DNA of 64,000 bases, from the sequence record MT586120.1; one strand, 5' to 3'. A model generated the notes under the pieces. That model saw only the letters and a program-made list of their open reading frames with translations, made no database searches and was not told where the DNA came from. Made by a program: the position numbers and the translations under genes. Positions within the stretch are counted from its first letter, which is position 1. Each line of letters begins with the position of its first letter. Positions 3-51,502 of the stretch are shown one piece after another.

Positions 3-365
3 ATCGAAGAGAAAGTATCATTCAAAGAGAGTAAAGTCGGAGAGAAGTTAAAGCAAGCAATTTACGTAGGCTTCACTCGCAATAACGATTACATTGGTAC
101 TGAGATTGTAAACGAAGAAAATTCAACAGCACATTATCAAGAATTGGAAGAGGATTACAACTTCATTGCTGATAGCATCCGCAACGCATTCGATACTAAT
201 ACAACATTAGCAACTATCACTGGACCTAACAAACTCCTGCAAATTCGTACCAAGGCATCTAAAACCAACGGCAGATATGTGCCCCTATGTTATGCTGGTC
301 AGACAATGAAAGATAAGGCAATGGCGTTCTATCTTACCGCTGGTTTCGGTAAAGAAATCATGTGA
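3..365 (+). CDS. 5'-truncated ORF, probable MutH/Sau3AI-family endonuclease (C-terminal part)
   Basis: Frame is open from base 3 (IEEKVSFKESKVGEKLKQAIYVGF...), upstream of the track start at 144. ELEEDYNFIADSI...TITGPNKLLQIRTKAS resembles the C-terminal 'EDY/W..I...G..LQ.R.K' pattern of MutH/Sau3AI-like nucleases. Confidence 0.5.
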   Translation: MEEKVSFKESKVGEKLKQAIYVGFTRNNDYIGTEIVNEENSTAHYQELEEDYNFIADSIRNAFDTNTTLATITGPNKLLQIRTKASKTNGRYVPLCYAGQTMKDKAMAFYLTAGFGKEIM

Positions 366-2998: not shown

Positions 2999-3033
2999 CT
3001 ATATTATACCACACTTCTTAAATATCCCCCCAT

Positions 3034-3068
3034 AAAAAAATCCCCCAGGTATTCAATGCCCCTAGGAG
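3034..3068 (-). terminator. Minus-strand Rho-independent terminator
   Basis: Minus strand CTCCTAGG-N11-CCTGGGGG (8 bp with two G-U) followed by A-T7. Confidence 0.55.
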
Positions 3069-3177
3069 ATGATTATTATTATCTTGATAACATTCGCTTA
3101 TCTCTGTGTAATCCCTCTACACAGAAGTATTGCGTATATCTTCAATAAGTACTTAGAGTGTCTTATCAACCTCAACA
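3034..3177 (-). ncRNA. Candidate ~140-nt structured small RNA
   Basis: Bounded by a consensus sigma70 promoter (3183-3211, minus) and a terminator (3034-3068). Internal 8-bp stem TCTGTGTA/TACACAGA (3103-3125) and long-range TTGATAA/TTATCAA (3084-3090/3163-3169). The only ATG gives a 4-codon ORF. Confidence 0.5.
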
Positions 3178-3182
3178 AGGCT

Positions 3183-3211
3183 ATTCTACAAGTATCTCCG
3201 TGTGTTGTCAA
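3183..3211 (-). promoter_or_regulatory. Sigma70-type promoter, minus strand
   Basis: TTGACA-17 nt-TAGAAT with TG extension on the reverse complement. Confidence 0.75.
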
Positions 3212-3537
3212 GCCCCCATCAAGAGTATCCCTTTAAGTATCTCAACCATCCCCTGACAAACTGCACAAGGCTATTTAGAGAGTCATAAAAGAAGTATTTT
3301 CATTGAGATGCCGTAGGCACACACCGTAGGTGTGTTAGTAGAGATACTTAGAGAAACATAGAGAATCTTTGAGAAACATAGAGGACCGCAGAGAGCGCGA
3401 AAAATCCCCCTCTCAAGTTATCTCCGAAGAGAGTATTACAGAGAGGGTTATACTATTACTAAGGAATACCCATATACTCTACAACTCACTCCGAAGGGTA
3501 TAGAAGAGCTTAGTGGTCAGGGGGGAAATATGCTGTG

Positions 3538-3545: not shown

Positions 3546-3782
3546 GAAGTGGAATACAAGCCTAGGAGCGTCTCTAATAGGCTCTCATCCTACGGGGGAT
3601 AGAGACACTCCGAGTTCCATTGAGGCTCCCCACAAAGGCATTTAGAGTACGTAGAAGAACATATAGTATCGTAGAGGTCCATAGAGGTCCTCTTTTTTTA
3701 TGGGCGAACCCTTTTTATGACCCTAGGGGGCAAGCCCCCACAATGAGGACCCATAAATACCAATAGAGAATATTAACTTATT

Positions 3783-48944: not shown

Positions 48945-48989
48945 CCTCCTGAACATCGGCTAAATAACTTTAGCTGATGTTTTTTTTTA

Positions 48990-50455: not shown

Positions 50456-50881
50456 ATGACTGATAAGAAGATAGCATCTATTAAACTAGTATCGGGTGAA
50501 GAAGTTGTATGTACATTACTGAGTATTGAAAAGGATGGTTCTTATACAATCTTATCTTTTACCAATCCATTAAGAATACAATTACGGGATAGAAGGAGGA
50601 ACAAAAGGTATTCATTAGAGCCTTGGTTGTGTCTTAAAAATGATACGATTCATTGTATTGATGTTACTAAAATTATTACAGTAAATGAAATTACTGATGA
50701 GGATGTTCTTAGTGACTATAACTCATACTACAGGAAAAAGATTAACTTAATGCCTAAACCTAAAAGGGAGATATCAACTTCTAATAAAATAGGTTATGTA
50801 GGTAATACAAAAGACTTTAAAGATGTTCTAGAAAAACTCTATAGAGATACTGATTCATATGAGAAGCCAACTGACGTATAA
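50456..50881 (+). CDS. Hypothetical protein, possible Sm-like fold (IKLVSGEEVVC)
   Basis: ORF track; usual position between uvsW and g55; AT-rich. Confidence 0.75.
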   Translation: MTDKKIASIKLVSGEEVVCTLLSIEKDGSYTILSFTNPLRIQLRDRRRNKRYSLEPWLCLKNDTIHCIDVTKIITVNEITDEDVLSDYNSYYRKKINLMPKPKREISTSNKIGYVGNTKDFKDVLEKLYRDTDSYEKPTDV

Positions 50882-50936
50882 GTATCTCTATGTTTCTCTA
50901 AGTACTTAAAGTGTCTTATCAACCTCGACAAGGCTG

Positions 50937-50965
50937 ATTGTACTCCATTTTGAGACCCTTGTCAA
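50937..50965 (-). promoter_or_regulatory. Antisense sigma70-type promoter back-to-back with g55
   Basis: Minus strand TTGACA-17 nt-TACAAT; downstream sequence is a near-copy of 3146-3182. Confidence 0.7.
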
Positions 50966-51025
50966 GTCTTTACCATTTATTGTGAATCTGTGCTATAATG
51001 TATCCATATAAGCAGTAGAAGTGCT

Positions 51026-51502
51026 ATGGCTAAAGCTAAAACTGAACATTACGTTAACAATAGAGATTTTCTTGATGCTCTTATCGAGTACCGAGAGAAG
51101 GTAGCTGAAGCTGCTGCTAATGATCGCCCTAAGCCTAGGATTACTAACTATATTGGGTCTTGCTTCCTTAAGATTGCTACCCACCTTAGCTATAAGTCTA
51201 ACTTCGTAAACTATATGTACCGTGAGGATATGATCTCCGATGGTATTGAGAACTGCGTACAATACATCCATAACTTTGACCCAGCTAAGTCAAAGAACCC
51301 ATTCGCATACTTCACCCAGATTAGCTACTTCGCATTCCTACGCCGTATTCAGCGAGAGAAGAGACAGCTTGATATTAAAACTAAGATTGTAGAGAAGAGT
51401 GGATTTGAAGCACTAATGACTTCTGATGCTAATCTAACCAACGAATACCGTAACGATTACAACGCAATCAAAGAAAACATCATTACCAAGCTTAACTCAT
51501 GA
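51026..51502 (+). CDS. g55: Late-transcription sigma factor gp55
   Basis: HYVNN.DFL.AL; YIGSCFLKIA.HLS.K.NF.NY; NFDP.KS.NPFAYFTQI; TGcTATAAT at 50991-50999. Confidence 0.95.
   Translation: MAKAKTEHYVNNRDFLDALIEYREKVAEAAANDRPKPRITNYIGSCFLKIATHLSYKSNFVNYMYREDMISDGIENCVQYIHNFDPAKSKNPFAYFTQISYFAFLRRIQREKRQLDIKTKIVEKSGFEALMTSDANLTNEYRNDYNAIKENIITKLNS

Follow-up and report, generated by a model that had tools for sequence, protein, structure and literature searches.

A predicted host-type promoter back-to-back with the late sigma factor gene g55 in Synechococcus phage S-CAM7 and other T4-like cyanophages

Introduction

T4-like cyanophages kill a large share of the Synechococcus and Prochlorococcus of the ocean. 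The timing of their switch to late gene expression is poorly understood and, to our knowledge, they are without the T4 proteins for reprogramming the host polymerase. The expression classes of one of them, Syn9, have reportedly been mapped in a transcriptome study by Doron et al. in 2016.

Several described phage systems can be set beside the locus reported here. The po promoter of lambda produces oop, a 77-nt RNA that has its own terminator and was once also proposed as a replication primer. The T4 origins oriF (uvsY) and oriG (gene 34) consist of MotA-dependent middle promoters and an AT-rich unwinding element. T4 uvsW is a late gene, and the T4 UvsW homologue unwinds the R-loops formed at origins. 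T4-type phages also carry PeSL cassettes, which end in a Shine-Dalgarno sequence and a start codon (PMC2839356, PMC4122927). In cyanophage S-PM2, CfrI is reported to be an antisense RNA at the psbA/homing endonuclease locus, and for Syn9 a single replication origin has been predicted (PMC2984593). The element described below does not appear in this PeSL, CfrI and Syn9-origin literature (PMC4122927, PMC2984593).

Sequence and gene context

The window analysed here is the 64,000-nt stretch comprising bases 62001-126000 of Synechococcus phage S-CAM7 (MT586120.1); a window position equals the record position minus 62,000. Its sequence is identical to that of S-CAM7 isolate 0809CC03 (221,362 bp; Kyanoviridae, Mazuvirus), the genes of which lie nearly all on the plus strand. 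Between a 141-aa ORF and g55, the minus strand carries a promoter followed by a conserved leader, referred to as copy A (Table 1). Because pattern bias was to be avoided, relatives were fetched from IMG/VR with the g55 protein, and the best 80 of more than 599 matching stretches, with g55 identities of 69-100%, were compared.

Table 1. Positions of the predicted promoters, leaders, repeats and genes (window coordinates unless marked as record)
Feature	Position	Strand	Basis
Sm-like protein gene, annotated 'methylamine utilization'	50456-50881	+	Pfam Sm_like, phrog_471, PDB 3BY7 match
11-bp perfect inverted repeat, arms ATAGAGATACT (50841-50851) and AGTATCTCTAT (50881-50891)	50841-50891	-	sequence; lineage-specific
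Conserved leader of copy A, including palindrome 50896-50911 and two 10-bp-phased TAGAG motifs	50886-50936	-	common to the four S-CAM7 copies
Hairpin AGCCT (50931-50935), loop TGTCG, AGGTT (50921-50925)	50921-50935	-	covariation
Invariant TGT; G at 50929 is the predicted start	50928-50930	-	T37, G38, T39 invariant in 81 sequences
-10 hexamer TACAAT of copy A, 17-nt spacer	50937-50942	-	consensus scan; alignment A2
-35 hexamer TTGACA of copy A	50960-50965	-	sequence; invariant in 81-sequence alignment A2
g55 promoter TTACCA-18-TATAAT with TG extension	50970-50999	+	consensus scan
g55, late sigma factor gene	51026-51502	+	MT586120.1 annotation
Copy B	3131-3211	-	self-comparison, profile model R1
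Copy B promoter TTGACA (3206-3211)-17-TAGAAT (3183-3188)	3183-3211	-	consensus scan, 11/12
Copy B transcript (predicted): leader, internal hairpin, terminator hairpin and U7 at about 3033-3070	3033-3182	-	fold
Copy C	record 214645-214718 (outside window)	+	self-comparison, profile model R1
Copy D	record 156441-156508 (outside window)	+	self-comparison, profile model R1

The product of the 141-aa ORF, annotated as 'methylamine utilization', is by its modelled fold an Sm/LSm-like protein. Pfam places it in Sm_like with E=0.011, below the curated cut-off, and it belongs to phrog_471; its AlphaFold model (36 homologues, pLDDT 74) superimposes with a TM of 0.81-0.84 on PDB 3BY7, the structure of a marine-metagenome Sm/LSm-like protein. 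We know of no function for the phage protein. The gene is syntenic with uvsW and g55 in Syn9, in S-PM2 and in 80/80 of the fetched loci (best 80 of more than 599). By their sequence context, uvsW and the Sm-like gene may both be expressed late. A terminator hairpin with a run of nine T residues (48945-48989) ends one base before the uvsW start codon, and its loop region contains CTAAATAA, which resembles the cyanophage late-promoter motif.

The backward promoter

Reading along the minus strand, copy A consists of CTTGACA, a 17-nt spacer, TACAAT and then a leader that recurs at 3147-3182. The promoter matches the sigma-70 consensus at 11 of 12 positions, and its start is predicted at 50929 because transcription usually begins 7-8 nt from the -10 hexamer. 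A degenerate pattern for 36 nt of the leader has exactly two matches in the window (3147-3182 and 50900-50935), with 0.00 expected from 100 shuffles. The first-pass annotation had claimed two minus-strand promoter-leader copies with conserved leaders and differing spacers at the 3-kb and g55 loci. Sequence inspection, consensus scans and the 36-nt pattern bear out both statements for the window; as a count for the genome the claim falls short, since S-CAM7 has four copies, of which C and D lie outside the window.

The copy A transcript would be convergent with the Sm-like gene and overlap its 3' end, a geometry repeated in the best 80 of the more than 599 relatives. On their own strand, copies A, B and C are not followed by any ORF; only copy D precedes ORFs. 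Nor is an ORF conserved downstream of copy A. A scan of copy A found no classical terminator, and an intrinsic terminator lies within 600 nt downstream of the g55-locus copy in only 2 of 75 loci. A conserved terminator is thus absent at the g55 locus, so that the copy A RNA would run antisense through the Sm-like ORF into uvsW. Metatranscriptome contigs from the 10 runs listed (nine of them recorded as RNA) carry parts of the region; they are without strand or transcript ends and are broken at the repeat. Rfam, searched at a permissive threshold, gives only chance-level matches for copies A and C, none of which reaches the gathering score. Two further roles for the leader were considered and rejected. 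A 30-codon TTG frame (50839-50931) is not conserved as a small peptide, the variable leader positions falling at non-synonymous sites, and pairing of the leader with the sequence around the g55 start codon finds no support (mean z +0.45 over 32 loci).

Lambda oop is among the closest parallels to this arrangement. Both have a constitutive host-type promoter directed against a neighbouring gene and a non-coding RNA (here predicted) that crosses a convergent 3' end, and both adjoin key regulatory genes. They differ in that oop has its own terminator, whereas copy A and its orthologues have none that is conserved; furthermore, the two are unrelated in sequence, and the cyanophage promoter shares its -35 block with a divergent promoter. 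CfrI is likewise an antisense non-coding RNA (predicted, in our case) of a T4-like cyanophage, but it comes from another locus, has no common sequence and is not tied to a consensus promoter beside g55.

Conservation among relatives

A minus-strand promoter lies between the Sm-like gene and g55 in 80/80 IMG/VR loci (best 80 of more than 599), where the -35 hexamer is TTGACA in 74 and TTGCCA in four, usually with C before either, the spacer is 16 or 17 nt and the -10 hexamer is TAnAAT-like. Syn9 (near 123.68 kb), S-PM2 and P-SSM2 have the backward promoter in the corresponding gap, flanked by the 'methylamine utilization' gene and g55, and P-HM2 has a weak version of it. In alignment A2 (81 sequences), the -35 and -10 hexamers and a TGT 7-8 nt after the -10 hexamer are invariant and the spacer is variable. 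The proposed link of the element to g55 is supported: the backward promoter adjoins g55 throughout the best 80 of more than 599 relatives, usually sharing its -35 block with the g55 promoter. Absence of the element upstream of g55 in relatives had been named as a reason to abandon the idea; among these best 80 of more than 599 loci, the promoter is present in every one.

IMG/VR scans with patterns for the S-CAM7-type element returned 27 contigs, which show the same four settings as S-CAM7. A-type elements lie between the ORF and g55; those of B-type sit in a long non-coding stretch and have the terminator of copy B; a terminator is also present in the C-type, and D-type elements stand ahead of various small ORFs. 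The leader core is kept in these contigs and flanks and spacers have diverged, the invariance of the core being partly built into the search patterns. All four S-CAM7 copies have orthologues in contigs with diverged flanks, which supports the earlier proposal that selection, not recent duplication, accounts for the likeness of the copies. The S-CAM7-type leader finds only S-CAM7 isolates when compared by blastn with GenBank phages, and the wider family is detected solely by synteny and by profile model R1. A 19-base core has seven matches in 596 Gb of prokaryote genomes, none of them cyanobacterial, against an estimated four or so expected by chance.

Because its position, orientation and consensus quality are conserved, the backward promoter beside g55 is probably a real, functional control element. 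Copy A is, by these comparisons, the S-CAM7 form of a predicted feature that is widespread in T4-like cyanophages and present in nearly all of them.

The divergent g55 promoter

The g55 promoter that had been placed close to copy A is present, with an extended -10 hexamer (Table 1). The motif TGnTATAAT, which is the TGn-extended -10 hexamer of g55, occurs in 80/80 relatives, and a plus-strand TTGTCA lies 16-18 nt before it in 59/80 loci (best 80 of more than 599 in both counts). This TTGTCA and the minus-strand TTGACA overlap by five bases, forming a -35 block common to both promoters in 59/80 loci (best 80 of more than 599). The -35 hexamers thus overlap in most relatives, and the two divergent promoters should therefore exclude each other. 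S-CAM7 is an exception, in which an insertion leaves the g55 -10 hexamer 29 nt from the shared -35 block; with this separation, strict promoter occlusion does not apply to S-CAM7.

Further copies of the module

Whole-genome self-comparison and the profile model identify copies A to D in S-CAM7. Copy B lies in a 1.08-kb non-coding region, and its predicted RNA of about 145 nt contains no ORF (fold z = -3.49); the terminator is kept in five related contigs (L010, L013, L015, L020, L021). Copy C has a clean terminator and a predicted RNA of about 70 nt (fold z = -3.1), downstream of which a late-promoter-like motif and then a glutaredoxin-like gene follow. Copy D is a 5' leader to small, exchangeable genes, in S-CAM7 an ORF of 51 codons. 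Here (L006 6420-6470, record about 156420-156470), the terminator hairpin of the upstream gene holds the -35 hexamer in its loop, and the terminator U-run is the promoter spacer, giving a compact PeSL-type overlap of terminator and promoter. The stem-loop at the promoter is clear in copy D and its relatives, reduced to a 4-bp remnant in A and C, and lacking in B.

The copies share with PeSLs a near-consensus sigma-70 promoter repeated in the genome and signs of recombination between copies, and copy D shares as well the stem-loop at the promoter and the exchangeable small ORFs. They differ in that PeSLs have no conserved transcribed leader of about 40 nt, no gene follows copies A, B or C (A and B are oriented against the genes), and the g55 copy is a fixed feature of the core genome whereas PeSLs belong to the hyperplastic region.

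Syn9 and S-PM2 have one second copy each, on the plus strand (in Syn9 at about 52.79 kb) ahead of small genes near baseplate genes. The two-locus circuit suggested in the first-pass annotation does not accord with these numbers: there are four loci in S-CAM7, two in Syn9 and S-PM2, and one in P-SSM2. The module was probably copied to three further places in the S-CAM7 lineage. The promoter pattern TTGACA-16..18-TAnnnT has 13 sites in the genome, four of which are the module copies and three of which precede tRNA genes. Three identical promoters, TTGACA-17-TATGAT with the same spacer, lie at L005 43924-44180 (record 143924, 144038, 144150), each directly ahead of a tRNA gene or of the next element of a tRNA array.

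The 1.08-kb region around copy B contains other repeats. On the plus strand, 10-bp-phased runs of TAGAG-type motifs occupy 3335-3400 (about six units) and 3643-3690 (about four units). A 28-bp tandem unit is present in two exact copies at 2754-2832, with its 13-nt core occurring a third time, and an 11-bp unit, CAGAGTTGGCT, is present in three copies at 2966-2998. Just downstream of the copy B terminator, the minus strand has an extended -10 element, TGGTATAAT (3003-3011), kept in B-type relatives, that would launch a second minus-strand transcript across the 11-bp tandem repeats. Upstream of the copy B promoter lies a degenerate, partial second leader start, AATAGCCTTGTGCAG (3257-3275, minus strand); in L015, L020 and L021 the same piece is found downstream of the leader instead. 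DnaA boxes, allowing up to one mismatch, are not enriched in this non-coding region. The first-pass annotation had called the 3-kb locus a putative origin region, a label that gains no support from the DnaA boxes or from GC skew, which is uninformative, although the phased TAGAG repeats are present at the locus and in the leaders.

In the S-CAM7 lineage, the leader runs on into a palindrome of 16 nt and a pair of 10-bp-phased TAGAG motifs. The 11-bp inverted repeat reported earlier is exact and is built from inverted copies of a TAGAG-type motif. Outside S-CAM7 it survives only in the most closely related contig (L009); in L018, L029 and L019 it is broken or deleted. The role assigned to it is hence unsupported, the repeat not being conserved among relatives; as a terminator it was rejected because of this and because no U-run follows the stem.

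The hairpin at the predicted start

A hairpin of 4-6 bp begins right after the -10 hexamer and extends to about +9, with the invariant TGT as part of the loop. Among relatives the arms covary (AACCT/AGGTT, AACTC/GAGTT, ACCCT/AGGGT; S-CAM7 has AGCCT/AGGTT). Native arm pairs were better than permuted ones in 5000/5000 permutations, also when each arm class was reduced to one representative. In 54/58 distinct sequences (p = 1e-10), folding is better for the promoter-sense strand than for the complementary one, as only the former has G-U or G-T pairs. An alternative hairpin, CUUGUC/GAUAAG, was rejected, as covariation in the wider family does not back it.

The hairpin adjoins the -10 hexamer, so that with a normal start its 5' arm would remain untranscribed, and an RNA-only model does not explain it. 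The pairing at the predicted start fits neither a plain RNA hairpin nor a protein site in duplex DNA. Possible accounts are a structure of the non-template DNA strand (in the open complex or an R-loop), an unusual start, or an RNA that begins further upstream. We know of no promoter feature that matches a one-strand hairpin straddling the start site.

Discussion

Several readings of how the backward promoter may act, through RNA or DNA, can be compared. The one that we tentatively prefer, short of real confidence, is that copy A is an antisense promoter for the host RNA polymerase that would compete with the g55 promoter and oppose the uvsW/Sm-like genes. Such a host-type sigma-70 promoter would fire away from g55, against nearly all phage genes, and yield a non-coding RNA comprising the G-rich conserved leader and then antisense sequence to the Sm-like gene and uvsW. 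Copy A and the g55 promoter would compete for RNA polymerase, the -35 hexamers, where they overlap as in most relatives, admitting only one polymerase. As long as the sigma-70 polymerase is active, convergent and antisense transcription would hold down the uvsW/Sm-like unit and block read-through into g55; with takeover of the polymerase by gp55, this brake would fall away. Copies B and C would give rise to their short terminated RNAs, and copy D would serve as the 5' leader of small genes. The Sm-like RNA-binding fold of the adjacent gene product fits a role at the RNA level. Counting against this best reading are the hairpin, whose 5' arm an RNA with a normal start would lack, the 29-nt separation in S-CAM7, the missing match between the leader and the g55 translation start, and copy D as an mRNA leader, for which an antisense role gives no explanation. 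We infer the transcription of copy A, its start position and all of the regulatory effects from sequence.

The hairpin and the composition of the leader raise the question of an R-loop replication origin in the style of T4 oriF and oriG, where the G-rich RNA would stay hybridised to the C-rich template and the hairpin in the displaced non-template strand would lock the loop, giving S-CAM7 up to four origins. The first 22 nt (+1 to +22) are G-rich and C-poor (G 37%, C 4%, skew +0.79, AT 58%) and are followed by 71% AT (+23 to +72), a value equal to that further downstream (+73 to +272). The hairpin is specific to the non-template (sense) strand and includes untranscribed bases, no ORF lies behind the promoter, the promoter adjoins uvsW, whose T4 homologue acts on such R-loops, and copy B sits in a long non-coding region with phased TAGAG motifs that occur in the A and C leaders too. 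Common to T4 oriF/oriG and this module are a promoter with a short downstream element, independence of a protein product, several occurrences per genome and closeness to uvsY/uvsW. However, the efficient-looking terminators of B and C would release the RNA, copy D leads into an mRNA, the G-rich stretch covers no more than about 20 nt, and the cumulative GC skew of S-CAM7 is a monotonic curve without an origin signal. In contrast to the T4 origins, moreover, the module has a host-type promoter, a G-rich first 22 nt and two terminated copies. We regard an R-loop origin as unlikely.

Alternatively, the module could be a DNA operator, in which the inverted repeat at the start site and, in the S-CAM7 lineage, the palindrome and the phased TAGAG motifs bind a phage or host protein that turns these strong promoters on or off, and the RNA is unimportant. 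The conserved block in alignment A2 starts at -6, ahead of the predicted RNA start, and the dyad has its centre at the start, where repressors classically bind. In 221 kb, TAGAG-N5-TAGAG has only five sites, three in the non-coding region around copy B and one each in leaders A and C, in both orientations; with its 10-bp phasing, the motif hints that a protein binds this DNA in the S-CAM7 lineage. Copies within one genome are more alike than orthologues, as expected if one protein must fit all of them; this likeness could come from gene conversion or from one partner to which every copy has to conform. Against an operator, the dyad arms covary by whole-sequence changes in close relatives, which base pairing suits better, and the G-T wobble is confined to one strand (54/58), an asymmetry that a site in duplex DNA should lack. 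We regard an operator acting through DNA alone as unlikely too.

It is distinctly unlikely, in our judgement, that the module is a passive, mobile, PeSL-like promoter cassette homogenised by recombination, the g55 copy being a byproduct of a bidirectional promoter without dedicated function. Copy D and its relatives, with the -35 hexamer in a terminator-hairpin loop and different small ORFs downstream, do look PeSL-like (PMC4122927), PeSL-like cassettes are abundant in S-CAM7, and within the S-CAM7 lineage copies A and C have spacers that vary in step, which points to gene conversion. A passive cassette would not be expected to stay at one place and in one orientation beside g55, with its consensus quality intact, in 80/80 loci (best 80 of more than 599) across about 30% protein divergence, nor to keep a leader core that codes for nothing, and its hairpin would not be expected to covary. 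We give as little credence to the broader proposal that the module is a transcription-primed origin of T4-like cyanophages, with the uvsW/g55 copy as the main origin and the S-CAM7 extras acquired.

To the best of our knowledge, what is new here comprises the covarying hairpin with its strand specificity, the leader start that is rich in G and poor in C, the number of loci with a shared -35 block, the missing terminator and the recognition of the gene next to g55 as Sm-like. On the antisense reading preferred here, the Sm-like protein gains a candidate RNA partner in the copy A leader RNA. The pairing of the start-site hairpin on one strand may indicate an R-loop origin or a novel mechanism by which initiation is tuned. 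For the poorly understood late switch of these phages, a promoter fixed back-to-back with the g55 promoter, and usually overlapping it, is a concrete candidate for control of late timing.
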